Positions 965 to 37,515 of a DNA stretch of 64,000 nucleotides are shown one piece after another. Source of the DNA: Styela clava. Its lineage: Eukaryota. The first letter of the stretch is position 1. Every line of letters starts with the position of its first letter. The notes beneath the pieces were generated by a model that was given only the letters and a program-made list of their open reading frames with translations, did not search any database and was not told the origin of the DNA. The DNA lies in contig NC_135261.1 of assembly GCF_964204865.1 (NCBI RefSeq), positions 9,796,001 through 9,860,000 on the forward strand. Direction: 5' to 3'. The position numbers were made by a program, and so were the translations under genes.

Positions 965-3900
965 ATGGGCAAGCCAGGAATGAACTTGAATTTAGGAGCT
1001 TCTAGGAAAACTAAACCGACTGAATATACTTCTTCCATGAAGAAAAGGAGAAGAGCATCGCAGGCGAAACACAGGTAGGCTATAAATAAAATATACCCCT
1101 ATCCTGTGCATACGGTAATCTAACTCTAAGGTAAAAACGGATGATTACAAAGCATGACAAGATGGTAAAACAAGGGTTCTCGGCCAAGCCTCGAAGCCTA
1201 AGTAAGTCCATTGTAACGTGGTAAATGTAAAACTAAAAGAACTAGAGGTAAATCTATCGGCATCCTATTCTCAAACCTTTTTTACTGTACAAGCGGGAAA
1301 GTGCCGGCAGTCGAAGTCCTACGCTATTGCCGAATTTCTCAGAGTCAACTTTTTTCACGCTGATTTATGGGAAAATATCGCTGACAGCATTGTTAACAAG
1401 TCAACTACTCATACTTATTTTTCATTACTACAATTTTTTTAGATTGAATGTTGCAACATGCTATCAAAAATTAAGAATGTCGATACCAGGTGTAAATAAT
1501 GATCATTGCAACAAAAGGTAGACCACATAATTTTAAATTTTAGTGGATAAAATTTTTGAGAATTGAATGTTTTCTGATTTACCATACAGTAGAAGCAACC
1601 GTTGTTTGAATAAAGCTGATTTATTATATCGAGCAAAGGAATACATAGTTCATCTTGAGAAGTCTATGGAGAAATTATTGAATCTGAAAGGACAAATGAC
1701 GCCATCACTCGACCATGGAAGTGAACGCGATGACGAAATTTTAACAAATGAAATTTCTAACTTCAAAAGAATGGATCAATTCAAGGATCATTTCGCGTCA
1801 ACGTAAGTTTATCATTTGAATCATGTCTACAACTTTATCATAACTAATATGACTGGGCGATTGTGCCAAGCGTTAGGAACACGCATGTCATCGCACCCCT
1901 GCTTACGCGGACTCATATCACGCGGGGTATAACTATGTCCAATTGGTTAACTATTTCAATATATCTTACTTGGACTGGTGACCTGGGTTCGTCAATCGTC
2001 ATACCATTAAACCGTCATATCGAATTTCCCCATCCCCGAGATGGTTATGAAAATCTGATCCTGGTGTATTTCTTATTGCGTTTTTGCATAAAAATTGTGA
2101 TTTAAGTATTTTTTCCATCGATTTTCCAATGTTATTCTTAAGTGTTTATACATACTTTTATAGCTTTCAAGTTGATCGGAATGCAGCGTCATACTTGTAC
2201 CATTCAGCAGAAACGAGAAGTACTTTGAAGCATCAGATTTTGAGGTGAATTACTGTATTTTATATATATTTAATATACACGGAATTAATTATGCATATTT
2301 ACATTTACTATGGCATATAGTAATTATACATGTCCCATCTCATAGGATTCCCATTGGAATAAATATCAATAAAAATTGTTTAATTTAGGTTTAGCGTATA
2401 CTAAATAGGACTACATGTAAAAAGAGACATGTAAAATAACAAAATTTACGAATTTCGGTAATCATAACTATTGTACATGTGTCCATCAGCCCCTTCATGA
2501 AGTATATTGTTATTGCTTTATATGTTTTGCTCTTTATAACTAACAAGAGAGCTATGCTCAAATATATGGTCAGGAAGTCCATAACGAAATGTCTTAACAT
2601 CATTTCCCCGAAAATCATACGGTTTTCGTGTTCTACGTGTCTCATGGGAAATACATATGTGTGCTATCCCATCCCATGGACAAGCCTGCGATTATTCTTG
2701 CTTGCTAGAGTAAAATAATATTTTATGTGTGATATAACTTAAATTCAACTTCAAGTATGCGATAGAATTTAATACAATTTAAGAAAAATATCTTTCATTC
2801 AAACTTCTATTTCAGTCATCGCACTAAGACTTCTATGGTTACTGTTGGAGAGAAAGATAGAAATTTGAATCATTGTCACGTACAAAAGGAAACTTTGCTA
2901 ACAGAAAGTCAGTCACCAACAGCAAAATCTAAGTAAGTTGAAAGGAGATATTAGAATAATGCCGTAAAACAGTGTTCCCTATTTTTTGAGCGATCCAAAT
3001 TAAAAAGAAATTGGTGAAATCATGCGACCCAATAATATGCTCAAACACTGAAATACAGCTAGTGCCTTAATTAGGGCCGCAAAGTTAAATTAATAAACTA
3101 TCACAAAACAATAATTTTCCAATGAAATTTATTTCAGCAAAAATGACTTCAATGTTGCACTAATGTAAAAGCTGAGTTTGTTTTTTATCAGCGTGCAGTG
3201 ATTTTATTTAAGCATAGCAAAATAGATGCCGCTAAGTGTTTATGTCGCGATACTCCTCACATGTATACAATTATAAGCAGCAGTGCAATACAAAATACAC
3301 ACTGAAATTTACCTGAAAATAAAATCGGTAATCTGTAGGATTTCGTTAAAAAAAACTCTACCGACACGCCACCTTATATCATGAGTTCACTGCATAAAAT
3401 TTCAGTAAACTGACGAATTTTAAGTAAATATGGCGGTTATTGGACACGAGGTGGGCATATACATCGATTTGTTATTATGTTGTTCTCCTTGTTTGGATCT
3501 TTTCAGTTATTGCTGGATCAATCACTTTGTATTTTTCAGTGGTTAAAGAGTGTTGTTGTCGCTATAAGGCTATTACTTTTATTCATTTCAAAATTTTCTG
3601 TGGGCTCTATGATTATGGGATTCTTTTTTGTGTGCGATGGCATCATCAAAATTGAAAATTAAGCACATTGTGTCGGTTCCGCGTTCACCTTTGTTGCTAG
3701 CTGGCAGTCAGTCAAAATATATATATATATATATATATTCATTCCTAATACCGTTCATTTTATATGCAGGGGGTCATCCCAACAAAGTGATGATTTAGGT
3801 TTTGTGTCAGCGGAGGGCGGAAGTCAAGATCAACACCATAGTAATAATATTAATAAAAAGATATCACAATCATCAACTCAACAGCACTGGAATGGGTGTT

Positions 3901-6208
3901 GTATGCCTCAGTGTAACGTACAGGTGTTTAGAATAATAATATAAAAATAATTGAATTTTGGGTCTCCCTTAGTATGCGTACCAGCTTATGGTTAGGTCAT
4001 AATTTTATTCCGATTTTCCTTATTTTATTTTTATTACGAGTTCGGGGACTGTTTGTGTTAGCCAAGTGAATATACCCCCGCTCAAAGACTTTTGCCCCTT
4101 TACACAACTTGATGGCAAGATGGCAAGAATACTTCCGAGTAGAAGTAGACAATTTTGCAGTGAGGAGTTTTATTTAATTGTAATTATCCATCGGAAAAAT
4201 ACATTTATTTCACGAATTAATGAACCATTTCATTGTAAGATAATAAAGTCACGCGCACTCACTCAGGAGTAAACAAGACCTATCTCTGAGTAAAGTTTAA
4301 TTCTCAAAAGCTATTGAAACTACAGGGCGAACCCAAATAGGTATACAGTATTTTAATAACCTAATAAACGTTAACCTATATTTGGGACACTGTGGTTTAT
4401 GGTGGTGCATTGAACGCAATTGAGGCGCAATTTGAAGGAGCTTTATTGAATACAATGAGAAAAACGTTGTCGAGGTAGTGAATTCCAATTGAGTTCTTAA
4501 AAACAGCTTGGCCAAATTTTAGTTGTATGGACCAGAAGTGTGCAACCTTTATTACAGGAGTGCCGGATCTAAATAACTGGGTGAAACCGTGGGCCGCAAC
4601 TTTATTTAACGTACGCTTTCTGGTAGTTGCAAGCACAATACTTTTGTTTATCAATCCTATGACATGGGTTTTGCGAATTGTACAAGTTAGCTGTTGTGGC
4701 ATTGTAACGTCATTGACATAGATAATAAATTGGACTCGGGTATAGGATTTGTCACGCAAAGGGATTGAAATTACTCGCACCGTTTAAAATTTGACCCTCA
4801 GGTTGCACACCCAAAGAATTCACTGAGAGTAACGTATAGGACTTAACAGTCTATCAGTACTGCTAAATTTAACAGCATTCTATTTCCAGGGTGCTCCTGG
4901 TTCGATTCACACATTCGGGAGTCCGTTTGTTCATTATCCAGCGACAGTTTTTAACACGTTTCCCGATTGTGGTTTCATGGATCCGTCTAATTTTTATTTT
5001 TACGTTCCAACTGCCGGATATCCGAGACAATTTTATACATCTCTTGATGATCACCACTCTTATTTGGCTAATGGAATACCGCCCATGCATGCGACTTATA
5101 ATATGCCAGGTAATTGTGGAATAATTTATATCAGATTAGATTCGTCGAAGAATAGTCAATTCTCTGGTGTTCGTATGATTCGATTTAAAAATAGAGATGA
5201 ATATAAAAAATTCTTATTATTGGAAAACATGTTTTGGGAACAAAATTTGTATTCTATAAATTCAGGACAGTTTCTCAACACCAGTTCTCTTGTTGGACAA
5301 ACTGGTAGCTTCGTGGCCGGCGCTGAACAAGCAACAACATCATATCAAAATATTATATTTGATGATATGAAGAAAAATCAAGATTCACAAATGAATATTG
5401 AAAGTGTTGTCGTCAAAAATCCATCAGCATTTATTGAAGAATTAAATACATCAAAACAGGAGAATAAGATTGAGGTGATTCGCGAAAATTCCATAAATAT
5501 TTTGGACTTTTCGTTAATAAATCGATATGGTTTAGTCATGGCTCCGTACCCTGGACCTGTTGAGCCAAGATAACAATATTAGGCGGAGGTGGAGCTACCA
5601 GGAATAAAATGTGAAAGCTTTATATTATAGTTTTGAGTCCCGCTCCTACAAAACTGTATTTGGGCTGAAATTTCATGACCATTGGCATATTGAAAACTTC
5701 AATGACTCCGGAATTGAAGCTGAAGCCATTCCAGTCCTGATTTCAGCATCTCTTGGTCTCCCTTGGCTTTTCTCTAAGATAAGTCATCTTTACTTCGGCT
5801 TTTGGGCAAATTCACTTGAAAATGTATTTATATTTGATTCACGAAACATAATAACTTATTGCAGCACAAAGACGATATCGCCGGAGAAAAAGAACTGACA
5901 GTCGAATATGAATATAGTGAAGCCGATGGAACGTTGGACCCACCAAGAATATGTTTAAAGAGTAAAGGTACAGTATTCGTTTAATTTCCACACAAACAAA
6001 ATTGCACTTCTGTACAATGACGTCATCAAAAATTAGGAATTGCAAACCTTTTTTGTGTTAGTATTTGATGTTTTAAATGTTTCATCAATGAAATATTGTA
6101 TGGTCCTTTATTTAGTAAATATTAATAATTTATATTTCCCAGAATCATGTCATGAAGAAGAAACACGATCTTCTCCTCGTACAATTATCGTCGTCGAAAA
6201 AACAGTAA
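965..6208 (+). CDS. STRA8-like bHLH protein, 8 predicted exons (965-1074, 1443-1517, 1590-1802, 2816-2932, 3770-3923, 4890-5109, 5266-5474, 6143-6208), about 387 aa
   Basis: Phase-consistent GT-AG exons give ...SSMKKRRRASQAKHRLNVATCYQKLRMSIP...LNKADLLYRAKEYIVHLEKSMEKLLNLKG...RMDQFKDHFAS. This is a clear bHLH that lines up with vertebrate STRA8 as I recall it (RRRLSQARHRATLAALFNNLR...KAKSHIPELEQTLDNLLKLK). AATAAA at 6548. The true start and the last exon are less certain; an alternative frame in the last exon ends at 6255. Confidence 0.72.
2330..2690. mobile_element. Partial MITE copy (CCCATCCCATGGGA family)
   Basis: Closely similar to the TIR-bounded copy at 18768-19172; ends GACAAGCCTG. Lies in intron 3 of the bHLH gene. 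Confidence 0.7.
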
Positions 6209-7761
6209 CAAGAACAAATGAAGACGAGGGAATTTCCGTGTTATCAGACAGCTAGTTCTTTTTCTTGCTGATTCTGGATAGAAACTTCAGTTTGCTGTGT
6301 AGTTTTAGGAGTTTAGGATATATCCAAGTAGTACGGAAATACGAGGAAAATTTTTAATGAATGTTTTATACTTTTCCTCTTAACAAGGTATCATTGGAAC
6401 GTTAGCAGTCAGTTTGTTTTAAAAGAGATGTGTTTTTTTGTTTGTTTGGTATTTACATTCTGGGTGAAGTAATAGACATGGGTTTTTACGTTTATATTTC
6501 AGATTATCGACACTACACGTTTAGATTCAACTTGCTATAAAGCTTTGAATAAAATTATTCCAAAGCATGATTTTTTTGTACCAAGCTATAAAGTGTGCTT
6601 CGACAAAGTTACACTGAGATGCTGGTAAATTTACCGCATTTTTGTGCTACCCCATCGCACTTTACGTTCTGGCTATAAAGAACAGAGCTACAATTGTGCT
6701 CGCTTTTTTCTACAAGAACCATTTTCTATTTTGGACCTAAAAAAGGAAATAAACTAACGCATAACGTAGATCATGTTTACTAATTTAAAAATCAATACAA
6801 AAAATCCCAGACGACATAGGAATCCGTAATGGATTTGAACACGCTTGAAAGAGCGTTTGGGAGAGTAAATTATGTTTAATGAAACGTGCAAAAGTTTGTT
6901 TAAATTTTTTTCTTTCTCTTAGGTTTTTTTTATTATATTTTTGAATTGGCGTGATGGATCAATTTAATTAATTTGACTCGAGAGACAGTGCGTCAGTTGT
7001 TTTTATTTTATATAATTTCATTTTTGTCAATTTTATTAGGTCTTTCATCTTTTCGTTAAATAATAAAGGTAAAATGAAAAATTTTGTGATGGGTGTTTCA
7101 AGACAGTTTGAAACTCACACTCTTGTTCTCTATGCCAGGGGTGTGCAATCTAAAATTCAGGAAGGCCAGATATAAATAACTGGGTGAAACCGCGGGCGTA
7201 CCTTAACATAGGCTATCTAGTAGTTGCAGACACACAGATTTTGGTTATTGATCTTGTGACATGTGTTGTTTGCACAAGCGAGCTGTTAAGGCATTATATA
7301 GGCATAGATAATAAATTTCACGTAGGTATAGGCTTCGCAAAGAAAGGGATTGAAATTACTCACGCGTACCAAATTAAATTAAAAACTAGTTTCGCCGGCA
7401 CACATCATTCATCAAAAAAATCTGACGTGCAATCTTTTTCACTCACGCGCAAAAGCTGGTATACCTCGTCCAAAAAAATCGATTTAATTCCTGACAAATT
7501 CCCAAGTGAATACTCGAGGAGATTATATAAGCTTCAAGTAATGATTGAATCTTGGCCATGAAATTAATTGATTCAGAAAATTGGTCAGTGAAAAAAGAGT
7601 TGTTGTCAAGAGCAGTTGTTTGGTAAAGAAACTTGTTTCTCATTTTCTAACAATGGTTTCAAGTAATGGATTTGTATTAGTCTCAGCTGTGCGTAGCCTG
7701 GTGTAGCAGATATATTAGATACCGTGCATGAAAGTAAAGGAATATAAAGTAATAATATTGG

Positions 7762-10700
7762 ATGAATCAGATTCGCAAACTTTCCAGAATGGTCGTTTTC
7801 TGGATAAGTTTGTCTGTTTTCGTTTGTGCATTTTCTACGGGTGAGTAACTAAAATTTATACATATATAATATATATATATATATATATTGCAAGAAAAAT
7901 TACATTACGTGACTGTTTAGAATTCAGCATTGAATACCATTATTGTATTTCGTATGTAGGCTATCGTAACTTTTACTTTACTATACCAACTTGTGATTTA
8001 CAACTTAGATATACTCAAATATATATGTATTGCTTTCTCAATATATATATATATTACCGTAACTGTTTTAGTTCACTACATAGCAAGTGTCCAAAAGTAT
8101 TTATCAGTCTTGTTCTGAGCTTTCACCTAGGATTAAAACAAATACCGTGATATTCAATCGGATTTATAAACTACAACATGTGTGGTTGATAGTCTGCGTC
8201 CCTCTCAGATGACAATTATAAGTGAGTCTAGATATGTACGCTATATATATGTATACAGTAGCGGTTAATCCGGTTACCATGACCCCAATCGGAGCCTAAT
8301 ATTCTTCTGCGAATGAGCAATAAACAAGAAGAAATGCATATTATGTTTTCAGCATAATTTATGTATAATTTTCGAATCCTAATCCTAATGTATGCAGCTT
8401 TCCATAATACACATTTTGATCTTCTATTACAGCCAACGCGTCATATCGTACGGAGGAAGCTTTACATCAACATTTATTTGGACGAGGATACAACAAAAAT
8501 ATTCTCCCCACACAGAGGTCGCACGAATTTATCAATGTTTTCCTGGGAATATCCGTTAATCAAATAGTTGATTTGGATGAACAAAGACTAATGATGACAA
8601 CCAGTTTGTGGGTCGACCAGGTATCATGTTGATTATACGTTGATCGCACATTATCTATGAGGCATTTAAAATGTCTCAAATTTATAAATAAAATCATTTC
8701 TGAATATTTATTCATATGGTAATATACTAAATTATTTGGTTCAAATACGATACCTGACAAAAATCAGTTCAAGGACAAAGACTCTCGGCCAAACAGTTGG
8801 GATAAAGAAACGTCATATATATATATAGTCGATTATTCGATATTTATTGGAATTATACCAGATTTAAACATTGATACTAATATCGCTCGCTCTCATAATA
8901 GTTCTTTGCGTTCATTTACTCAAAATGACGCTATGAAGTGTGGGTTATCATACATTGTAATTTCATCTTATATTCTAGTCTTGGCAGGATATTTTTCTTC
9001 GTTGGAATCCTGAAGAGTTTGATAATATCACAAGTACAAGAATTCCATCAGATTTCATCTGGATTCCTGGTATTGTACTCATGGAAAAGTATGAATTTTG
9101 TCTATCACTTTTGTTACCATCCATCGCATACTTGATCACCATTGTTCAATTTGCTAAAAATTTGGTTTTTGAAAAATACGATACGATAAAAAACTTGGTT
9201 GTTTTTCGGAAGATGCAGAAGTACCAATTAAATCTTTTTGCATTCATCATTCGATCCCCAGATTATATAACTTCTACCTCATGACGTCGCAAATTGAACT
9301 AAATTGTTGGACGCAAAGTGAACTCATAGATCATTATGCTAATTTGTTGTTATTATTGTAAAACACCGCTTTTCTGAGCAAATACTGGACAAATTGATTT
9401 CAAATTTTCATTATTGAAGAAGTCGCTAGAGAGATAATTTTTTCGGATCGTACGGGGACGAAATTCAATCCAAAATTTTGTTGATTTATCAACCGCAACA
9501 CAGCATCCACAATCCTTCATATGACATCTGGTACAACTATTTTCAAATCTGGCAGGAAATTTTCTGATAACACAGTATTTGAGTATTGTTTTTTCTCTTT
9601 TTACTGTACCTATTCATTCAGGGTTTTGTCTTTCCCATAAAACTTATGATCTGGTTGAATAAACGAAATGAATAAGTGAAACATTGCTCACAGTTGTACA
9701 CGCTTTTGCCAATTTACACGTATCACTTCTACGTACTCCTTTTTCATTTCAGTGCGGACGGTAATTTCACCTCTTCTCATCCAACTAAGGCAGTCATACG
9801 TTACGATGGTTTGGTGCAATGGAGTCCACCTGCAGTATATAAAAGCACTTGTGCAATAGACGCAACCTTCTTTCCATTTGATATGCAAAATTGTACAATG
9901 AAATTTGGTGAGTTATTGCACCAATTTGGACGTTAGAGGATTTGTATAATGAATTACGGGACTTTTGCCTGTTGCCCAGCTTCGATAACATCCATATCTG
10001 TAGTGGTACTAAGTTTTCGTGATAGTCCGATTCATGGAATCAAAATCTTTTTATCTTAAGTTATCTTAATTATCTTTAAGTTATCTTGTTTGCAGTCGAC
10101 TCAAACCGAGCGTTTGAAATACCCAAAGTTGGCTGATTTACTTTGTTTTGAACTGAAAACTGTGTTTTCTCTTCCACATTGGTCGTTTTAGAAACTAAAT
10201 AACCAACCGATTGATACTTACATGTTTATTATGACAATTATATGTTAATTATGTAACAGCATCGTGGTCATACGACGCAAGACAAGTGAGACTTTATGCA
10301 TCAGAAAAAGCTGTAAGTTGCATTTTCATTTTATATCTGCATATGTTTGGTTGGTAATTTGTCTCAGTGATTTGAATAAATATTATTTCTAGACTTAAGA
10401 ATTTTAAATTGTTTATGAAAGATAATTTGAACTGAGAGCGTTAAACTATTCGTCCAATCTCAATTCGACTTATAATATCAAGTTATAACCAACTAAAAAG
10501 TCAAGTTGATACAACTTTTTTATGCTGACAAAACACAAACAAATAACATGCATTTATAGGTTAGTCTCAGAAAATTCACTCATAATGGAGAGTGGGATGT
10601 GGTTGATATACATGTCATCAATTCAGAAGGAGATAGCTTGTGAGTATCTGAAACCTTGATATCAATCTTGCCTCAATGATATACAATCGCAATTTTTTCT

Positions 10701-13253
10701 ATGTTTTAGGCTTAGTCACCATTAACATTATTTTAACAGACAAGAAGACGAGGAAAACTGGTCACACAGTATCTTCTCGCATCCTAAAGTAACTTATTGT
10801 TTTATATTGCGACGACTACCGCTCTTTTACTGTACATTTCTCATTGCTCCATGTCTTGGAATATCATTTCTTACATGTAAGTATCCATCGGTACTGAAAA
10901 CCACATTAGGATAATTAGCTCCGGCGTCGAACGTGGACAACGATCTTTTTACTAGGCAAAACTGGTGCCTATTATTCTATAGTAAGTTATAAATAGTAAT
11001 AAGTTGGAAAATCATAATTTAGTGCACATCAAATAATGCATTTAAATGAAAATTCGTGTTTACGTTCTCTGATTACTGACTCTAATAATAAACGAAACTA
11101 TATTTTTGAAGCTAAGTGCCGTATTATATTTAATTTAAATAATATGGGAATTTTAAGACAAATATTTTGTGCTTGGTCGTACAAGTAATTTTTACTTTTT
11201 CTGATTTTTTTACAGCTTTAGTCTTCTACCTACCCTCGGCCTCACAGGAAAAAATTACTTTATCTATCTCAGTTCTGCTGGCTCATATTTTCTATCTTCT
11301 TGTCATAACTGAAATAATGCCAGCATCGTCGAAGGATTTGCCATTACTTGCTGAATATCTTTTACTAAACATGATTTTTATCACTCTGTCTATTGTATTG
11401 ACGTCGGTGGTGTTGAATGTTCATTATCGATCTGAGACAAGTCACAGGTATGCTATCGTAAACTAACCAGCAATTCGTGTTAATTTGCAATTCAGCGTTG
11501 GTTTTCTGCAGCTCAATGAAACCTTGCAAGACAAAAAAAATTTGCTGTTTTACGGTTTTGCCATAACTTATAAAATAATTCATATACAACAACTTTTTAT
11601 GCTATGAATTTTTATTGATTTTCTTTGGTCGCTACATTGCAAAGTTGTCTCAAAGATATCCTATCCCACTTTCCCTGTTTCACATTCATCTGGATCTTCC
11701 ACATTTGTCACGCCCGTACCACTGTTATGAATTGGAAAAGATATGAAAAAACATAAGGAAAATGACTAGAGTAATATAAGTGGTATTCGAGGTATGTTAT
11801 GGGTTAGGATAAAAGATACAAAAGATAATGATGATGACGTAACAATGCCCAATAAGCGCTGTTGAAGATATTATTGTGGCGGACATCGTCCGGAGAATTG
11901 AATTCGTCGCCCCTTTCGCTTATCAAACGATTAATTGAACGATTTTGACAATCGTATCGAAATTTGGAATGGATTCAAATGTGGGGCTCTTTACCTGCTC
12001 TGGAGTAGTAGTACAAGTGTGCGTTGATTGGGACACGATATTTTTGAGACACCCACCTTGCACCACGTATTTTATTTTCACGGATTACGTATTTGGTAAA
12101 TCTCACCTTTTTGCAGAAGTTTACCGTCATTTATCCGCTCATTCGTTCTTGAGACGGTTCCTACTTTAATATGGATGGAAAAGCCTGACCTGACAATACT
12201 TAGAGGAACCTCATTGGAACAGAAAATGAAAAACGGCTTGCTGTTTAAGAAAGAAAATCTCATTATGTAATTTTACTTACGTTCAGTCTAGCGTTTGGCA
12301 AATAACATATCATAGCCAAATATTTTCACTAAACATTGGTATCTGTTCGCCAAAGTTAGACAGTGTTTATATATATATCAGAAATTATGAACAATACTTT
12401 ACGTAACTGTATGTCGCTGTTTCAGTGTACTAAGTTTCATGAAGAAAAATTAAAAATTGAATTTCATGTTCCCATCTTTTCAAGAAACTTAAATTGAAGC
12501 ATATACTGCATCAGATTGAATTGGTCAATATTAGCTTAAGGGTTTCAAAAGTATAACAGCACGAAAGTTTAAGACATTTGCGTATTTTCGTTTGTATATT
12601 TTTGGCCCAAGCATCGTTTAACTAGGTTTGTGTTTTGTGTCGATTTTTATTTGTGCTGATGAGCGGGCATATGATATCTTTCATGTTTTAAACTTTTTCA
12701 AATGAAGGCTGATGTTACGAGCTTCACTTGACAATGGTCGTAACCAAGGTTATCACATTTTAATCTTCACTATAGTCTTGTATCATATTCAATTAACAGT
12801 TTATATTTTATTTATGAAACATATAAATGTAAATTTCAGAGGGCGACATCTACTAAAAGAGCTAAGAAGATGTACAAAACTACCTGATAATCTTTGCACA
12901 CAGCTTGGCGGAACGATAGAAAGTGCGTTTTTCATTGCAGAAAAATTGAAACAAAAACTTCATCACCAACAGGTAAGTGATTGTGTGTTAGTTAGAATAC
13001 AATAATTTTTTTTTATATAAATCAAATTGGTTTAAGTAATTTCGCGATTTTCTTTTATCAGGAATCTGAGGAGTGGAGGTTCATCGCAAACGTGCTCGAT
13101 CGAGTATTCTTCATTTTATTTCTTACTGTGTCTGTATTGGGAGCCTTGATTTTGATTCTGCCGGCATGGTTTGATAAAAGCTATCTGTTGTATAAACAAA
13201 GAGAATTTGAGACAACGGAACATGGTATCGGTTTTGAGACAAATCTGCGCTAA
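7762..13253 (+). CDS. Cys-loop ligand-gated cation channel subunit, nAChR family, non-alpha type; 11 exons (7762-7840, 8433-8620, 8979-9088, 9753-9907, 10260-10312, 10560-10639, 10740-10876, 11216-11447, 12117-12266, 12840-12972, 13062-13253), 502 aa
   Basis: Exons total 1509 nt, in frame. Signal peptide, [17 protein letters not shown], Cys-loop [15 protein letters not shown], loop B SWSYD, RRLPLFY before M1, M2 [23 protein letters not shown]3 ending VLNVHYR, M4 [14 protein letters not shown]. No vicinal Cys pair in loop C. Confidence 0.93.
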
Positions 13254-22333: not shown

Positions 22334-23075
22334 TCAATCAGAGTCACTTGCACACAGAAGAATTAATTTAGTAATGGGCCTATCTAAGATTGAATGGTTG
22401 GTTTGCACCGTAGCAGAACGTACACGACCTTTGTTGTCGGGAAACGTTGCAATGATTCTACCCAACAGCCATGCATTTCTTGGCAAATTTTCATCCATCA
22501 CAAGTACAACATCATTCTTAGCTAAATTCCTTTGAACTTTGTTCCATTTTTGTCTTGTTTGAAGCAGAGGAAGGTATTGTCGTCTCCATCTTTTCCAAAA
22601 CACATCAGCTAAGTATTGTACTTGTTTCCATCTCTTACGAACATACAAGTCTTTAGCATCAAATACTCCTGGAGGAAGTATCGGTTCTTCTTTCAACAAC
22701 AACAAATTGTTCGGGCTCAAAGGTGTCAAATCTTTTGGATCATTGGATACAGTTGTTATTGGCCTTCCATTCACTATGGATTCACATTCACACATAAGTG
22801 TAATTAAGCTTTCATCAGTTAATTTTTGTTCTCTGCAAATAGCGTTGAAAATTTTTCTAATTGTTCTGATTTGTCTCTCAAAAACTCCACCATGGTGAGA
22901 AGCCGCTGGAGTTTGAAACAGCCACTTGATGTTCTTTTGCAGCAAAAACCTATGTATTTGATTCTGATTCCAAGTCTTGATAGAATTTCTCAATTCTTGT
23001 TCTCCAGAGACAAAATTTGTTCCATTATCTGATCTTATTTCAACTACTTGTCCTCTTCTTGAAATGAATCTTCTA
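22334..23075 (-). pseudogene. C-terminal part of BEL/Pao integrase, out of frame with the polyprotein
   Basis: RRFISRRG..IRSDNGTNF, ASHHGGVFERQIR, FWKRWRRQYL, RPITKL. The HHCC zinc finger and first catalytic Asp are missing. Confidence 0.9.
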
Positions 23076-26000
23076 ACTTGGATAATTCTGATATCCACTT
23101 TAGCCATTCCTGTTCACACTCTGGAGGAATTGAATCGTCCCATCCCAGCTTCTTCCTGCACAATCCTTGCATAAGGACCTTCATAGGTTGAATGACCGGC
23201 TGGCCAATGCCAAGAGGGTCAAATATTGAGTTCACAACACCCAGCATACCCCGTCTGGTAGCTGGTCGTTCAGTGTATTTAGTACTGAAACTTATTGTAT
23301 CTTCATTTGCGTTCCATATCATGCCAAGAGCTCGCTCAACAGGCAATTCATCTATAGAGATATCCAAACGCTTTGCTTCCTTCGATCGGTGAGCTTCTGG
23401 AATTGAGGCCAATACTTCACGGTCATTGCTCACCCATTTCGTCACTTCAAAACCACCTTTAGCAGCAATTTCAGTAACACTCTTTATATGTTGGAGGGCA
23501 CTAGCAGCATCCGGCTTAGAATCACAAAAATCATCAACATAAAATGAATCATTAATTGCATCAATCACACTTTGTTCAAAATCATTTTTGTTATCTATTG
23601 CAGTTTGTTTCAAAGCGAAGTTGCAACAACTTGGAGAGCACACAGTTCCAAAGAGAAAAACCGACATTCTATAAATTTTCATGGGTAAAGTGATGTCACC
23701 ATTTTCCCACCAGAAGAAACGGAGGAAATTTCTATCACATTCTTTCACCTTTACCTGATGAAACATGGACCGTATATCCCCTTGAACAGCTACAATATTT
23801 TTGCGAAAGCGTGACAAGACTCCAACTAAATTATTTGTTAAATCCGGCCCCTGTAACAGGATGTCATTAAATGAAATTCCTTCTGATTTTGCTGAGCAAT
23901 CAAATACAACCCTTAACGTTTTCTTCTCTGGATGACGAACTCCGTGATGGCTGAGGTACCAAGTCCTTCCTTCTTCTTCATTGGTATTCAGAACTTCTTC
24001 AGCATACCCCATTGTTATCATATTTGCAACAAAATCCTTGTATTCTGCATAAAATTCCGGTTCCTTGTGAAGACGACGCTTTAATGATTCTGCTCGCTGC
24101 AAAACTTGATATTTATTTGAGTGCAACTTAACATCAGGATTCTTCAATGGTAAACCTATTTCGTAATGTCCATCAGTTCTGAGCTTAATTGACTTACTAA
24201 CTTTGTCGAGAAAAACTTGTTGAATTGGTGAAACCTCATCTTTTTCATTAATTGCAGAATCAACAACATCTGCACACATTTGGCACAAAGGATTTAGTTG
24301 AGATTTGGTGAAATATGTAGAATTTTTGGTATTTCCATTTTTCGCAGGGCAGTTAACCATCCATCCAGCAATTGTCTTCGATGCAAAATAATTGTTTGGG
24401 CCATAAATCACTTCCAATGGTTTATGCAAACCAAGATTATCTTTGCCAATCAAGAGCTCCACATCACATTCTACTTTGGGTAGCACAATACCATTAAATT
24501 CTTTAAATTGATCAAGATCACTTTGTGTAGGGATATCTGTTTGATCAACACCAATTTGATCGTTTGAAAACAAGGGATTTAACCTTACATATTTTGACTC
24601 CTCAAAATCTGCCAGTTCGAGGTTCTTTATAACAGTGCATTGCTTGTGTTCCACGGTATTATTTATAGTACGAATGTTCAAATTTGTAACTGGTCCATTG
24701 ACCTTTAATTTATTCATTAGCGAATTGCTTATAAAAGAGCAAGTCGATCCATTGTCAAAGAATGCATTGGTTATAACAGCATTTCTTCTACCAGCTATGC
24801 GTACCTTAACAGGTACAACATTGAGCAAAACCTTTTGTTCGTCAGAGGCATTCAGGAATGCATTAAATTTGGTTTCAGACATCTGTGTCCTATAATCATT
24901 ATGTGTTTGTGTAGTACTTTCATGACTACTTGATGTAGGGACTTTTATTGGTTCCTTATCCGGAGGATGAAGAAGTGTTGTGTGTTTTCTTCTGCAGTTT
25001 GCATTTTTGCAAGGGTTGTTTCGTTTACATTCCCTGACCCAATGCCCAGATAATAAACATGAAAAACACAACTTTTGCTTTTTTACAAACTCCAATCTCT
25101 TATCATACGTCATGCCTCGAAATTCATCGCATTGATTTAAGTAATGATCTCCATCACATTTTACACATCTGCGTACAGGTCTATTATTATGAACTGTAGT
25201 TGCAAATGAGGATTTGTATGGCCTCGAGCCTCTTGTGGAAATAATTTGTTTTGATGTATTAAATTCGATAGAGGGAACATTGCATACTTCTCTAGTTTTC
25301 TTACGGACGTAATCAGCAAGATCCTCTATTGTTAGGTCTTTTTTCTTTATTTGTAGTACATTGTCCATCTTTGATAACCACCCAGATCTCCATTCAGGCG
25401 GCATTCTTAAAGCTATTTTTTCTATGGTCATAAGGGCAACATTTTTGTATTCAACCCCTATCAACGTATTTTTGCATGACATGATTTCTGCTGAATACAC
25501 AGTTAATGATTCTTTGTTACTCAAATTCAGTCGAGGACCATTTGCTATGGAATTAATGCAGGATTCGCCAATTTGAAATTTCTGACCATAAGTTTCTTCA
25601 AGTAATCGGATAGCTTCATCATAGCTATCTGTTCTGTGCTGGCATCCCTTAACCAAAGCACGAGCAGGGCCTTTTGTATATTGAAGAAGATAAACTAGTT
25701 TGTGCTTTGGATTTTGTAATCTGCTACCAATTACGGTTTCAAAAATATCAATGAAATCCCTATATTCACCTGCATTACCACAAAATACAGGGGGTTCAGA
25801 TGGTGGCAAACCTAAAGTTTGAGGCACATATATAACTTGAGGGTTAGCTGCTTGTTGATTCGAAATATTGTCATTCTGTGCATTTGCATTACTTGGTTGA
25901 CTGCCCACAATAGGCTTTCGAATTGAGCCAATATTCACTGAGTGCATTGCCTCTGCATTTTCAATTCTGCCAGGATTATCTATTAGTGTTGGTAATGTAG

Positions 26001-27456
26001 GGTTCATATTAACAGCCGAACTAGTCGTATGCAATGGAATAGTATTGAATGAAGTTGGAAATTTCGTTAATATTTCACTGTGGTTCGTTCCAGCCCCAGT
26101 GTAAATTGCATTGCTCTGCAATTGTCTGTTATCACCCACACATGACATTGGAATTTCACAACACCTTAAACTTGGCTTAGATACACATGATGCAGGTACA
26201 CAGGAAGTCAAACCAGAATTCACCACACTACAAGAGCTCACAAACAAATTTTCAGATGTTAACGGTATTTGGGCCATGTCACACACAGATTCAACAACAG
26301 TCACACATGCACTCGGGACCATTTGTGGACGGCAAACCCCAAAATCAGAGGAGGAATAAGAAACTGACTCACCATGCTCTGCGGTGTTCACACGTTCACT
26401 TGGTCGACCCTCACAATGCACATCACAACTTCTAGAGACAGGTAATTGATTAGGTGTTGAAAATGGTGTACTTAAAGCTGGTATTATTGGACTGGTCACA
26501 TTTAATATTTTTGTTTGTTTCATAGAGGAATTTGATGGCTGCTGACTGATTTCGACACTAGCAGCAACAGGGGGCGTATTTATAAGAACGCCTCTTTCTG
26601 CTAAAGTTTCATTTAAATTAGTGTCCAGTTCCAATTGTTCACGTTGATTTTTGTCTTCAATTTCTTGTAGGTTCATCTGCTTCCTCTTGTTGAACTGCTC
26701 CATCTCGATGTTTCTTCGTTGTAGCATTTGTTGGCGACGATGTTGAAAAGCTTCCAGTTCGGCCTTTCTCTTACGCTCTTCAGCTTGCTGTTTTTGTAGA
26801 ATCTGTTGCCACTCATTGTCTAAATTTAAGTTTTCAACTTGATTGTTATTTTCCCAAATTTGTTTCTCACTTTCTAGGCGATTTTGCAATTGTTGTTTCT
26901 CCAATTCTGTGCGCCTTTGTTGATTCAGCTTTCTTGTTTCGAATATATTCTCAATTTGTGAATCACTCAAATTGGACATTCTTGTTGAGCATGAAGATCG
27001 CGACCGAATTGTACCACTGCGTGATGTTATCAAACTTCGCATTACTGATCTATGTTGCTGACTATTTATTTTTGAAGTCCTGCTTTTATTTGTCTTTATC
27101 TTCGACCTTGTTGTCATAGCATGCGCATTTGTTGATCCTTCTTTAGCAAGGCCAGATGCTACAGATGCTCCTTGGTTGTTCTTTTCTGAACTTGGTTGGA
27201 CATCTGACTCTACATCAGGACTTCTTAGGAACAGATCTTTGATTGACGCACTATGACAATCTTTAGAAGTTGATTGACTTTCATTAGGCAAAACAGGAAT
27301 TATACCTTGTGTTGGAATAGTCAGCAAAGCAATTACATTATTTTCAGTTGCTTCAGAAAATCCAGTAATCGACATATTTTCTAACATATCATTGTCTCTG
27401 TTCACTAGTTCATCAGCGGCAGCTGGTTCATTGATGTTGTCATTTGATTCGGCCAT
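23044..27456 (-). CDS. BEL/Pao Gag-protease-reverse transcriptase polyprotein, truncated before RNase H
   Basis: Three Gag Cys/His knuckles (CVKCDGDHYLNQC, CFSCLLSGHWVREC, CKNANCRRKHTTLLH), protease AFFDNGST, RT motifs LRVVFDCS, LLQGPDL, GDIRSMF and FYVDD. Ends just after WLKWISELSKL. Confidence 0.93.
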   Translation of the reverse strand: MAESNDNINEPAAADELVNRDNDMLENMSITGFSEATENNVIALLTIPTQGIIPVLPNESQSTSKDCHSASIKDLFLRSPDVESDVQPSSEKNNQGASVASGLAKEGSTNAHAMTTRSKIKTNKSRTSKINSQQHRSVMRSLITSRSGTIRSRSSCSTRMSNLSDSQIENIFETRKLNQQRRTELEKQQLQNRLESEKQIWENNNQVENLNLDNEWQQILQKQQAEERKRKAELEAFQHRRQQMLQRRNIEMEQFNKRKQMNLQEIEDKNQREQLELDTNLNETLAERGVLINTPPVAASVEISQQPSNSSMKQTKILNVTSPIIPALSTPFSTPNQLPVSRSCDVHCEGRPSERVNTAEHGESVSYSSSDFGVCRPQMVPSACVTVVESVCDMAQIPLTSENLFVSSCSVVNSGLTSCVPASCVSKPSLRCCEIPMSCVGDNRQLQSNAIYTGAGTNHSEILTKFPTSFNTIPLHTTSSAVNMNPTLPTLIDNPGRIENAEAMHSVNIGSIRKPIVGSQPSNANAQNDNISNQQAANPQVIYVPQTLGLPPSEPPVFCGNAGEYRDFIDIFETVIGSRLQNPKHKLVYLLQYTKGPARALVKGCQHRTDSYDEAIRLLEETYGQKFQIGESCINSIANGPRLNLSNKESLTVYSAEIMSCKNTLIGVEYKNVALMTIEKIALRMPPEWRSGWLSKMDNVLQIKKKDLTIEDLADYVRKKTREVCNVPSIEFNTSKQIISTRGSRPYKSSFATTVHNNRPVRRCVKCDGDHYLNQCDEFRGMTYDKRLEFVKKQKLCFSCLLSGHWVRECKRNNPCKNANCRRKHTTLLHPPDKEPIKVPTSSSHESTTQTHNDYRTQMSETKFNAFLNASDEQKVLLNVVPVKVRIAGRRNAVITNAFFDNGSTCSFISNSLMNKLKVNGPVTNLNIRTINNTVEHKQCTVIKNLELADFEESKYVRLNPLFSNDQIGVDQTDIPTQSDLDQFKEFNGIVLPKVECDVELLIGKDNLGLHKPLEVIYGPNNYFASKTIAGWMVNCPAKNGNTKNSTYFTKSQLNPLCQMCADVVDSAINEKDEVSPIQQVFLDKVSKSIKLRTDGHYEIGLPLKNPDVKLHSNKYQVLQRAESLKRRLHKEPEFYAEYKDFVANMITMGYAEEVLNTNEEEGRTWYLSHHGVRHPEKKTLRVVFDCSAKSEGISFNDILLQGPDLTNNLVGVLSRFRKNIVAVQGDIRSMFHQVKVKECDRNFLRFFWWENGDITLPMKIYRMSVFLFGTVCSPSCCNFALKQTAIDNKNDFEQSVIDAINDSFYVDDFCDSKPDAASALQHIKSVTEIAAKGGFEVTKWVSNDREVLASIPEAHRSKEAKRLDISIDELPVERALGMIWNANEDTISFSTKYTERPATRRGMLGVVNSIFDPLGIGQPVIQPMKVLMQGLCRKKLGWDDSIPPECEQEWLKWISELSKLEDSFQEEDK

Positions 27457-29371
27457 ATTTTCAAAAACTTTGTTGCAGTATTGCAAATGTCAAAAAACTA
27501 ATGTAGACGCCAAATTTGGAGTGCCTTTAGCGCCCACACCAGGTGTATTTCTTAGATGGTCGATCTGTTTTAGTAAACTGATTTTGTCACTCCAATGCAA
27601 AAAGACGCGTACAACAGTACAAGTTGATGTCGTTTATTGTCAGGAAAGTACAGGTGTATGAAGATACGTCGGTACGATGTTATAGGTATGATAATACAAC
27701 AGTACGTGATTACGACAATACGTGGATACGAGAGTACGTCAGTACGAGAGTACATCAATACGTGTACGGGAAGTACGGCAGTACGGTTTTCTAAATAAAA
27801 CAAACAATAATTACAACAAATAATGTGCCGGCAAGAAATAACTCGACAATTGAAATCATTAACTAAACAAAATTGTACACATTAGAACTGAACTTAACAT
27901 ACGCAGGTTTACGCCAGTATAATAACAGTTGCGGCTGATTACAAAAGTGGTCATTATAGAACACGGTACAACCGAAATATTCCTTAAATATAAAAACAAT
28001 AAACTGAAATACGTACTTGACAGTGTAGCTTTCAGCTTACAAAACAATCGACAGTTGATTGGGACAGTTATTGAAATTAAGTTAATGTTATTAAATCTAA
28101 ATATACGAAAATACAATTAAAACCTTGGAACTACAAATCTCCAGACAACGAAAACCTTGCACCACAAATCCCACAGTCCTGAGAAGGTCGAATCAAGGTA
28201 CTGAAGCAGCGCGCGCAGCAAACGCGCACGGGGTATTATGATGTCACAATCACTAAAATCTGTGAACGTATGTACCACCAGCGCCTCCAGTGGTAAACAA
28301 CAAAAAATATAATGAAGCGAAAGAGGCAGTTTCAGGTGGTATTGTATAATATTTTATGCGGATAGGAATAATGAGTCAAAGAGGTTTCAAGGTAGGAAAT
28401 ATTAGCGTCACTTTATTTTTGGAAAATTTTGATAGTTGTACCAGCTACCAGTATACCTTCACCAATTTGGAACCGAGATTCAAAGAATTAGGTGTAATTC
28501 ATGGATCTGACGACAGATAAATAACTTTGTTAGTAGACACGCAATGGGCCTTTGATACATTTTGCTAGATTGCTGTGGTCCTGTGGTATTGTTGTACAGA
28601 AAAATCATTTTTTCGCATCAATTAATATACTGTGTTTCGAATTTTTAGTGCGTGGTTGAGTTTGCTAAAAGGCTTTTACTTTTTTTTTATTAATATTTTG
28701 TCCGTTATTTGTCGATTATGTTAGCAAATTCGACGCAAAGCTAGAAAACTAAGGTCTTGAGGTGCCGGTATACCCATGCGCAACATTCGTAACCACATAA
28801 TTGAGCATCGTTCGTGTATTTGGTTTCATACTGCATTTGAAGTTCTGTTTGCATATCAAATATATTTTTTAAAACTACCGGGCCCCAGCCATTTTTAAGT
28901 TTTGTTCACGGATTTTTGATAAAGAAAATAGTCGAGAAGCCCTGTACACTGCAACATTGCACCACAATTTCACTTTGTCAAAAGTTGCAGATTTAAAATA
29001 TATTTAAAAATGAACTTTTAATTAACCAAATCCTGTAATATTCCGAAAAATCTTGTTGCTGATGAGTATATATATATATATCTTTCAGTCTCTTGGGTAG
29101 CAATTGATCATGTTTCTGCAAAATAATGATAAAAATAGCGGAATCAGATTTTAATCAAATGGATATATATATAACTCACTACACAACTTTAGGCCATCAG
29201 CAGTATTTTCATGCCCAAACGGACGATATATTCACCGGGTGTTTTGGGTTAATTCTTAACCATTGTCAGCCTTGCCTTACCAAATTTATTATTACTGTGT
29301 ATGGAAAACACGACTGTGAAAACTACAGCTTACCTTTTTGTGTTATTAAACTGAGTATTTCGAAATGTATG

Positions 29372-33646: not shown

Positions 33647-34190
33647 CAGGGGTCGGGAACCCATGGCTCGCGAGCCATATATGGCTCTTCTGGTGACGGC
33701 ATATGGCTCTCAGAAAAATCTAATATCCCAAGACTAAGCTTACTATTGTTACGGGATTTCAAACTCTTTTATAGCCAAATTTGGCAGGAAATTCCCAATA
33801 CGTTTGAGAACGCGCGTCTAGCACACGTCTATGTTATGTAAGATAATTACCAGACAGGCATTGTGACAAAAAAGGGGATTCTGGAACATATATTGTGACA
33901 TCACAGAGCGATAGAGTTTCAAAAACACTACGGAGATGCCTAAACGAAAAAGGGTGATGAGTATCGTAGATTTCAACTTGGGCTGCATGTGAGCAACCGT
34001 TCAAGGCCCGCAGCGACTACATGCAGCATCAGAAATCACATTAAATGTATATTGACATTGTATGTGTTGACTTTTGAGTGAACATTTCAGGCCTGATTAA
34101 GTGAAGAAATGTTATATGGCTCGCACGGAAATGCAATTGAAAATATGTATATTTTATGGCTCTCTTGACCAAAAAGGTTCCCGACCCCTG
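33647..34190. mobile_element. hAT-type MITE nested in the LINE
   Basis: TIRs CAGGGGTCGGGAACC...GGTTCCCGACCCCTG and a perfect 8-bp TSD CACTAGAT (33639-33646 and 34191-34198). Confidence 0.93.
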
Positions 34191-34321
34191 CACTAGATAG
34201 TGAAAGATTAAATATATATGTCAGGATATCAATGATATGTTCTGGAACATGTTTCAATACTTTAAAAGGAATACCATCGATTCCAAAACTTGACTTGGGC
34301 TTCATTTTGCGTATAATATTT

Positions 34322-34759
34322 TTTATTTCTAATGATGTAGTTGGCCGTAAAAACATGGATGAGGATTCTTGCTTCCCAAGATATGAAATGTGATTTTTGT
34401 CACAGCCAGCTGGTTGTGGCATACAGTCGAGCAGGCTTTGTGCCACTTGGGAAAAGTGTTCATTTAAATTTATTTCTAATGATGTAGTTGGCCGTAAAAA
34501 CATGGATGAGGATTCTTGCTTCCCAAGATATGAAATGTGATTTTTGTCACAGCCAGCTGGTTGTGGCATACAGTCGAGCAGGCTTTGTGCCACTTGGGAA
34601 AAGTGTTCATTTAAATTTATTTCTAATGATGTAGTTGGCCGTAAAAACATGGATGAGGATTCTTGCTTCCCAAGATATGAAATGTGATTTTTGTCACAGC
34701 CAGCTGGTTGTGGCATACAGTCGAGCAGGCTTTGCGCCACTTGGGAAAAGTGTTCATTT
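34322..34759. repeat. Tandem repeat, 3 x 147 bp (49 codons), inside the LINE ORF
   Basis: TATTTCTAATGATG recurs at 34324, 34471 and 34618. The ORF at 34087-34926 shows the 49-aa unit three times. Confidence 0.95.
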
Positions 34760-37515
34760 ATGTTATTTGCAATTTGTGTATTACTGCAATTGAGTCCAAT
34801 CAAAGGACAAGAACCTGTTTTATTTTTACCAATAAGTTCATTAATTGTTTTCCACACTGCCTTGATGTTGCCTTTGTTAGAGGCAAATTTAGATTTGTAA
34901 TAATTTGATTTCATTTTGTAGAGCAATCGAGTATAAAGGTTCCTGCATTCATCGAACTGTAATTTGTGCTTGTCATTTATGTTTTTATTGTATATTAATT
35001 TCTTATAAAGTTGTTGAGTTTGCGTAACTCAGTATCATACCAAGGTTTGTTTGATCTGTTTGTTTGTTTTTTGTAAGGAAAAGATTGAGAGTAAGCAGTA
35101 GAGAATTGTTCAAAAAAAATTTCAAAGCAAGTGTTGGGAATTGGGATCCTGGATGCTGCTGAAGTCATCAATATCAATAGAATTCAGTTCGTTCATAAAT
35201 GTATTCAAGTTGGACGAAGTAAACTGGCGGTAAAGCGTTTCAATTCTGTTCTGAATTTGCTTTTCTAGAAGAGAGCATTGTACAATTGGCAGATGATCAG
35301 AAACACATTCTGCTAAAACAGCACTATTAACTTTTTTATCATATACGTTTGTCCAAATGTGGTCTATACAGGTAGCAGAACTTGAAGTTATCCTGGTTGG
35401 TCCTGGTCACTAGAGCAAATATACTGATTTGAGCTGTTGTACATGAAAACACTGTTTATGTTGTTGAATTCATCATTGTCAGTATTGGCTGACTCAAGAA
35501 ACATTTGGTTTAGGTATTCAGGATCAAGAATTTTAGTAAGTGCCTGGGCTTCAGCTTTTTTTGAATGAAGGGAAGTACATAATTCTAATAAAATAATCCT
35601 CAAATGCATAACAGATATACAAGCTAGCCTGTATTCAATCTATAAATGAGAAAAAGACTGTTGAAAAAACGCTAACACACAGCGATATATTTAAACAAGT
35701 CAAAGCAACGCACAAGTATAAACCTGACGAAACGTGCTACGCAACGACTGTCCCCCTAAACAGCACAAAAAACGGAGCTGGCAGCATCGGTCAAAGGTCA
35801 TGAAAGTTGGTAATTGTCTTCATATCCATGATTATGTGTGTTTTATTTCATTGAATATGTCCGAAGAAATGTCAAAATTAATGTTTTCACGAGCATCAGC
35901 TTCTATTCTTATTCCAGTAACACTGGATAATCAGCAAAATATTAGAGCTGACGTTGCCATTCAATAACAATTCTTTCACTCAAATAGATCAGATTTTCGG
36001 GCATGGTTGCAAATATTCGCTCGTTTTCTGGTTTTGCTAGTCATTTGTAACGTGATTCTATCGATAGGTTACGGATACTACCTCATAAAAAATAGTCATA
36101 ACCAAACATGGCAAACCATTGAATAAGAAACAAGACCCCAAATAGGAGAGAGGGGGGTGGACATAGATTGGCCACACCACACCAAAATATATATATAACA
36201 CCACATCGCACACGCTTGCCATCATGATTCATTTACCATTGTTCATGTTGCCCGTGCTTTTTTACTTCTTTGATACTTTACAAACAAAATAGGAAGGAGC
36301 CTTGATGATAAGATCAATGATGCATATTCGTTAATATATATATAATATTCCAAGAAACAGGAAAGAAGAAAATAGAACATGTTTGCGCCTGTTGCATTTT
36401 AAGATGATGTGTGTACTCAACTTTTAATAATACTGAATTCCTGCGTGAAAATACCGATACCGAAATTTTCAATATTGTCTCAGCATCCCAACTCTCGACT
36501 TAAGCTTTATGAACATCGTTTGACCTCCAACGTCGCGACTTTTAACTGGCTATTCATAGGCGGAAGACAGAATTCATTGGAGCATGAAAACGGTTTTTTA
36601 GGCTTACAAAATGCAGAAATGTGGATGGGATTTTCAAGTTTATCTCAGTAACTTCAGTAAAGGAAGTTACTAGAGTTATAATGCGGGCGAATTATATGTA
36701 CCGGTACTGGTATACCATTATTTATATTCGTTTCAATACCTGTTATTGTAGTGTCGTATTGCTCCTGACAGTACATCAGTACAGCAGTATGTGCAGATTG
36801 ATGATTTCCCCACATTTTGGCATTCCTACATTCTGACATTTGGAGAAGATATTACAGCACTGTCGCCATACGGTACCGTATTTAAAGACATCAATAATAC
36901 TGTAATAACAGTGAATGGAAACTTCTCTTTTACGAGAGTTTAGTTCCATTAGGTAAGCATTCAGCAAAATACAGAAATAACGTCGACGGGCGGCGGGAGG
37001 TACGGTACCGGTAGGTTATTATTATCTTGACAAACATGGTGTGTTCTTAGGCATCTACGATCGTGTCAGATACCCTCGTTTCTGCAACTAGGCTATTGGT
37101 TTATGTTTCATTGGTCCATATATTGGGACGTCTGGGAATTGTACCACACTAAAAAAATTAAGTCATGAATAAGACATCAAACTTTGGGGTCTCGTGTAGT
37201 TTCGTACCGTACCTGACGTACTTGTACGTTGTAGGCGAAGGCGAAGCGTAACAATTTTTTGATATGTCAATCCTAACCCCCATCTGATTACGCCATTCAA
37301 AAATTAAATCATTACGACATCACAATCACAGAGCTTGCCAAATATACGCACAATCGACCGAAATGGCATTGGTGGCGACGATAAAGAACTGACTGACGTT
37401 ATTGGTCTCTCTCCTATTGGAATCGTTGCGACGAGCAATGAGAGAAATAACTGTTCGATTTTGGGTGCTCGTTTGCGCGTCTTGGATGGCAGTTTGTATA
37501 GTTTGAAAGGCTCTA

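Follow-up and report, generated by a model that had tools for sequence, protein, structure and literature searches.

A 64,000-nucleotide stretch of the Styela clava genome (assembly GCF_964204865.1, contig NC_135261.1, positions 9,796,001 to 9,860,000; hereafter the window, to which all unprefixed coordinates refer) raises the question of whether STRA8, the basic helix-loop-helix (bHLH) protein linked to meiotic entry in vertebrates, has a counterpart in an invertebrate chordate. An initial annotation, made from the DNA alone, read three spliced exons near the start of the window as a pre-vertebrate STRA8 orthologue that would push back the origin of the meiotic-entry switch. These exons belong to a real, single-copy gene, LOC120330289, which is probably a tunicate representative of the STRA8 family, though a divergent one, as judged from the best profile match of its bHLH domain.

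STRA8 is commonly termed vertebrate-specific (PMC4574967). An amphioxus Stra8 orthologue, identified as a reciprocal best hit to the human protein (8e-09), was reported in 2013 and taken to place stra8 in stem chordates (Rodriguez-Mari et al. 2013, PMC3769385). Hagfish and zebrafish are without Stra8, and more distant species are needed to tell a loss of Stra8 in hagfish from a later origin of the gene (Shimada et al. 2026, PMC13637641). Because of the amphioxus report, a tunicate STRA8 member is phylogenetically expected, and the S. clava gene would fill a gap rather than move the origin; the proposal that it pushes back the meiotic-entry switch was in this respect overstated.

LOC120330289 is a single-copy gene with eight coding exons

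The three exons first noticed (965-1074, 1443-1517 and 1590-1802) are part of S. clava LOC120330289, located at C16, 9.80 Mb, whose product is the 425-residue RefSeq protein XP_039253109.2 (P0001), named "uncharacterized protein". Used as a phmmer query against 1.84 billion representative proteins, exon 3 returned P0001 with 100% identity over residues 63-132. The P0001 sequence joins the three exon peptides exactly at the 1074/1443 and 1517/1590 junctions, and the exon phases (2, 2 and 2) are mutually compatible. Mapped back onto the genome, XP_039253109.2 resolves into eight coding exons that are collinear on the + strand of the window and total 1278 nt, corresponding to 425 codons and a stop, with GT-AG boundaries at all introns. 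The splice junctions of the initial annotation were thereby borne out, its three exons being the first of the eight, and it was equally right in suspecting an invertebrate host, S. clava being a tunicate, that is, an invertebrate chordate. All whole-protein tests described below were run on the database protein P0001, and the window DNA itself was analysed exon by exon.

An older RefSeq version of the protein (P0004, 463 residues) has the same first seven exons as the current model. Since the two versions share their 5' exons, the junctions of the first three exons have been annotated twice, independently of the initial annotation. The versions differ at six amino acids, all past residue 225 (chance about 0.006), and this distribution suggests that the N-terminal half of the protein is under stronger constraint. 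LOC120330289 is present as a single copy in the 377-Mb genome. Two weak paralogue candidates, at C8:12436568 and C8:8739550, encode no bHLH sequence when translated and were dismissed as noise.

An atypical bHLH domain and its closest family profile

A Pfam scan of XP_039253109.2 with 24,736 models gave two matches only, bHLH_STRA8 (PF23175) and HLH (PF00010). PF23175 is the top match, with 24.4 bits against a curated cut-off of 25 bits (E 3.1e-5), and extends over residues 27-96 and profile positions 17-77 of 80; PF00010 scores 17.6 bits against a cut-off of 20.7 bits (E 0.0035), over residues 37-85 and profile positions 13-53. The two alignments differ at the N-terminal edge of the domain: the basic region RRRASQAKHR is aligned by PF23175, whereas the PF00010 alignment begins after it, at profile position 13. 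When the exons were scanned one by one, weak matches were seen in exon 3 only, which by itself aligns with positions 50-77 of PF23175 (14.8 bits) and positions 35-53 of PF00010 (12.8 bits). Exon 3 contributes 14.8 of the 24.4 PF23175 bits, and therefore both halves of the domain carry signal. One genomic locus only displays a PF23175 signal.

The basic region departs from the canonical pattern in its DNA-reading positions. In the E-x-x-R register, the S. clava protein reads Q32, A33, K34, H35 and R36; the E-box-reading Glu and Arg are replaced by Q32 and A33, and the next Arg by H35. The initial annotation had described a bHLH lacking E-x-x-R, and the residues Q32-A-K-H35 agree with that description. 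An AlphaFold2 model, computed without an alignment and used for secondary structure only given its low confidence (mean pLDDT 36), has helices at residues 24-50 and 66-96 with a loop between them, additional helices at 107-134 and 148-166, and a disordered remainder. Helix 2 continues into an extension of about two heptads (I79, L82, M86, L89).

The specificity of the PF23175 match was controlled with ten canonical bHLH domains of S. clava, each extended within its open frame by 16-20 residues on the N-terminal side and by up to about 32 on the C-terminal side. PF00010 recognises every one of them, with 36-65 bits, and PF23175 none, even at E<=10. The control set includes one MLX-like and one MYC-like domain, whose downstream flanks read as zipper-like, and one copy from a group of bHLH genes on C2. 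Because the ten controls give no PF23175 match, it takes more than basic-region degeneracy or a lengthened helix 2 to produce one. In the C2 group (C2:16024012-16034504), several bHLH genes of very similar sequence are distributed over both strands of about 10 kb. One long open frame encloses the bHLH domain in each of them, and the basic region is unusual (KTAAKEK-x-RL); the copy used as a control has no PF23175 match.

Alignments of XP_039253109.2 with S. clava bHLH domains are in register; the closest of these domains is the MLX-like one, with 28% identity (13 bits, phmmer). A sequence search of the PDB gave no bHLH chain at E<=10. A recent duplication of another S. clava bHLH is ruled out by the 28% identity of this best in-genome match. 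The canonical bHLH-zipper proteins (MLX, MYC/MAX type; PF00010) share the same fold with the S. clava protein, but its basic region is not alignable to PF00010, the residues that read CANNTG (E/R) are replaced (Q32, A33, H35), and its extension, about two heptads long, is not a full zipper.

Probable STRA8 affiliation and its alternatives

The STRA8 orthology proposed at the outset stands in part: PF23175 is the best family match and does not respond to ordinary bHLH domains from this genome, but its score falls 0.6 bit short of the curated cut-off. Several other observations also count against a STRA8 affiliation. The PF00010 score lies under its own cut-off as well, and the ESM Atlas returned generic HLH clusters only, with low scores (0.78-0.82), and nothing once the PF00010 clusters were excluded. 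Beyond residues 27-96, XP_039253109.2 has no Pfam similarity and no match to an HMG-like domain, and a Glu-rich tract is absent, with at most 6 Glu per 30 residues (at most 8 in the alternative tail of the older model). The initial annotation had remarked on a C-terminal part devoid of recognised similarity and of a Glu-rich tract, and the Pfam scan and Glu counts bear this out; in both respects, and in the absence of a predicted HMG-like domain, the protein is unlike vertebrate STRA8. Word searches of 5.8 billion proteins with the whole protein, residues 20-100 and residues 97-200 returned the query alone, the phmmer search of the 1.84 billion representatives with exon 3 returned the query and two low-complexity non-relatives, and a scan of metagenome contigs gave no homologue.

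The surroundings of the gene bring further points on the same side. From -10 kb to +6.3 kb, RGKTSA half-site pairs at spacings of 0-8 (DR0-DR8) are absent from both strands, so that, unlike vertebrate STRA8, the S. clava gene has no consensus retinoic acid response element (RARE) nearby; about 0.1 such pairs per spacing are expected by chance, which makes this absence weak evidence. NUP205 and CNOT4, neighbours of human STRA8, are found at C3 18.34 Mb (Nup192 domain) and C6 6.66 Mb (CNOT4-type RING) and are unlinked to the gene on C16. The synteny result is uninformative, because NUP205 and CNOT4 are themselves unlinked in S. clava. The motif likeness to STRA8, in SQA-K/R-HR (RRR-x-SQA-R/K-HR) and in LL-x-LK after helix 2, is a presumed one. 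A single-cell atlas of the Ciona testis notes the lack of a STRA8 homologue in the Ciona genome (PMC9776925).

A fast-evolving, tunicate-specific orphan bHLH, in which the E-box contacts were lost independently, would be favoured by much of this: the PF23175 score under the Pfam cut-off, the restriction of similarity to a domain of roughly 70 residues, the lack of an orthologue in the protein (1.84 and 5.8 billion) and metagenome searches, the missing RARE and NUP205/CNOT4 synteny, and the lack of STRA8 in the Ciona literature. Its likeness to the STRA8 profile would then be convergent, both being degenerate bHLHs with a short helix-2 extension, and the protein would still act as a dimerising regulator or a dominant-negative HLH partner, unlinked to meiosis. 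What makes such convergence rather unlikely, though it is the main rival explanation, is that PF23175 ranks first among the 24,736 models (E 3.1e-5) and extends through the basic region, which is beyond the reach of the generic HLH model, and that ten other bHLH domains, the C2-group copy and two zipper-like domains among them, carry no PF23175 signal. Descent from a common STRA8/MEIOSIN bHLH ancestor, or a position nearer to MEIOSIN, would instead make the gene pro-orthologous to both members of the vertebrate meiotic-entry pair and not to STRA8 alone. MEIOSIN (BHMG1) is the germline bHLH partner of STRA8 and has long disordered regions; the vertebrate pair interacts via the bHLH domains and has a comparable domain layout (PMC13637641). 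Pfam holds no separate MEIOSIN bHLH model against which to test the protein, so PF23175 may serve as the nearest proxy for both. We consider this descent improbable, as the HMG box that defines MEIOSIN and is its most conserved feature (PMC13637641) is absent from the S. clava protein, and a single genomic locus carries the PF23175 signal. More improbable still is a reading of LOC120330289 as an artefact of annotation or a gene in decay, an untranslated chance run of open exons. The 3' end does differ between the two RefSeq versions, and the protein cluster contains no transcript-derived copies; against an artefact stand a run of eight in-frame exons, all bounded by canonical splice sites, the 425 stop-free codons, a domain match that extends over three exons, and amino-acid differences between assemblies that spare the N-terminal 225 residues.

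Proposed function and comparison with known STRA8 proteins

Tunicate genes are often much diverged. As a member of the STRA8 family, LOC120330289 would represent in tunicates, in strongly diverged form, what STRA8 is in vertebrates and the 2013 gene in amphioxus, and would be a functional gene for a 425-residue nuclear regulator with an atypical STRA8-family bHLH at its N-terminus. The KKRRR cluster would direct nuclear import, and dimerisation would involve both helices as well as the short heptad extension (I79, L82, M86, L89). The protein by itself would not be expected to read the canonical CANNTG E-box; like STRA8, it may cooperate with a partner or use sites other than the E-box. The low-complexity C-terminal half, rich in S/Q/N and in Pro and aromatic residues, could function as an activation or interaction region. 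A role in germ cells at meiotic entry is a hypothesis, by analogy with STRA8. A more specific scenario is possible, though we regard it as doubtful: LOC120330289 may be a true tunicate STRA8 orthologue whose expression begins in germ cells as they pass from mitosis to meiosis. In that case the STRA8 arm of the meiotic-entry switch would be a pre-vertebrate chordate invention, and its absence from Ciona, hagfish and many teleosts would reflect secondary loss or divergence beyond detection.

The N-terminal architecture resembles that of vertebrate STRA8. The bHLH is located equally far from the start, with a basic region that begins near residue 26 and lacks the E-box Glu/Arg, and helix 2 continues into a short hydrophobic extension. 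The overall size of 425 residues is in the range of STRA8, and the loop is presumably longer than that of STRA8. The amphioxus Stra8 candidate (fgenesh2_pg.scaffold_222000016; Rodriguez-Mari et al. 2013, PMC3769385) is, like LOC120330289, a gene of a non-vertebrate chordate. The two differ in how they are recognised: the amphioxus candidate was found by plain reciprocal BLAST (8e-09 to human), whereas the S. clava protein is detectable only by the family profile.

Implications for the age of the MEIOSIN-STRA8 axis

A literature search returned no paper that names LOC120330289, contains the motif of the STRA8 basic region or describes a STRA8-like gene in tunicates or other invertebrates under that name. 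The claim of a pre-vertebrate origin is itself not new. If the affiliation is correct, the presence of a STRA8-family gene in tunicates, as the vertebrate sister group, would, together with the amphioxus report, favour secondary loss, and S. clava would offer an invertebrate chordate in which to test how ancient the tie between STRA8 and meiotic entry is. The advance is modest, since a pre-vertebrate origin has already been proposed and the evidence consists of one near-threshold domain match. LOC120330289 is a useful and easily tested lead on the age of the MEIOSIN-STRA8 axis.

Exon organization and the 3' end

All coding exons of LOC120330289 are on the + strand. Coding exon 1 (965-1074) starts with the ATG at 965-967 and encodes residues 1-36 and 2 nt of R37. 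Its peptide, MGKPG...SQAKHR, reads KKRRRASQAKH ahead of the R37 codon, with AAA CAC AG as the last bases, and the basic region, KKRRRASQAKHR, is read directly from 1037-1072; the donor is CAG/GTAGGC at 1074/1075. An in-frame TAG (947-949) stands 18 nt 5' of the start ATG. It directly follows an acceptor-like 'ttcag' (942-946), which could be a spliced-leader trans-splice site; spliced-leader trans-splicing is common in tunicates.

Coding exon 2 (1443-1517) completes the R37 codon and runs into that of S62, of which it contains 2 nt. Preceded by a T-rich acceptor, tttttttAG, that ends at 1442, it encodes the peptide LNVATCYQKLRMSIPGVNNDHCNK(S), which comprises helix 1 (LNVATCYQKLRMSIP) and the beginning of the loop, and ends at the donor AAAAG/GTAGAC (1517/1518). 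Coding exon 3 (1590-1802), which completes S62 and takes in 2 nt of the T133 codon, encodes the peptide RSNRCLNKADLLYRAKEYIVHLEKSMEKLLNLKG...DHFAS(T) between the acceptor ccatacAG and the donor AC/GTAAGT. In this exon the loop ends and helix 2 follows, together with the heptad-like extension, at residues 66-96 (about 1600-1692); another helix starts after it. Introns 1 and 2 are both in phase 2 and fall inside the codons of R37, at the end of the basic region, and S62, in the loop.

The remaining exons encode the region downstream of the bHLH. Coding exon 4 (2164-2244) covers residues 133-160 and coding exon 5 (2816-2932) residues 160-199, with the donor AA/GTAAGT at 2932/2933. Residues 199-250, in which S, Q and N are abundant, are encoded by coding exon 6 (3770-3923), and residues 251-324, with abundant Pro and aromatic residues, by coding exon 7 (4890-5109). 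Coding exon 8 of the current RefSeq model (5266-5573) ends the protein with residues 324-425 and the stop TAA at 5571-5573.

The 3' end of LOC120330289 differs between the two RefSeq models after the donor at 5474. The older model P0004 leaves exon 8 at this donor and continues into two alternative 3' exons (about 5866-5968 and 6143-6255, + strand), which give a more acidic tail of 71 residues; the net charge over residues 326-463 of P0004 is -11. Intron 7 (5110-5265), 156 nt long, is in frame, stop-free and enclosed in a long open reading frame (ORF) at 4977-5573. Its retention would add 52 residues and keep the protein in frame; both RefSeq versions remove it.

Other features of the window

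Interspersed repeat pairs with 74-96% identity are found at 2333-2679/18802-19156, 4513-4594/7116-7197 and 13801-14284/16427-16893. One repeat copy is placed within intron 4 of LOC120330289, and another pair flanks its last exons. The downstream neighbour (7790-11466, + strand) is a Cys-loop receptor gene of the nicotinic type, whose exons match Neur_chan_LBD (9676-9933) and Neur_chan_memb (11167-11463).

A BEL/Pao-type long terminal repeat (LTR) retrotransposon occupies 22334-27486 on the - strand; it consists of a 1480-residue ORF with DUF1759, RVT_1 and Peptidase_A17, followed by a 257-residue ORF with DUF5641, an integrase C-terminal region. Further along, at 34087-34926 (- strand), lies a 279-residue ORF in which a unit of about 49 residues (NEHFSQVAQSLLDCMPQPAGCDKNHISYLGKQESSSMFLRPTTSLEI...) occurs three times in tandem. 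This ORF has no Pfam match and may be part of a non-LTR element. The base composition changes between 40001 and 56000, where the G+C fraction is 0.30-0.31, compared with about 0.35 in the remaining window.

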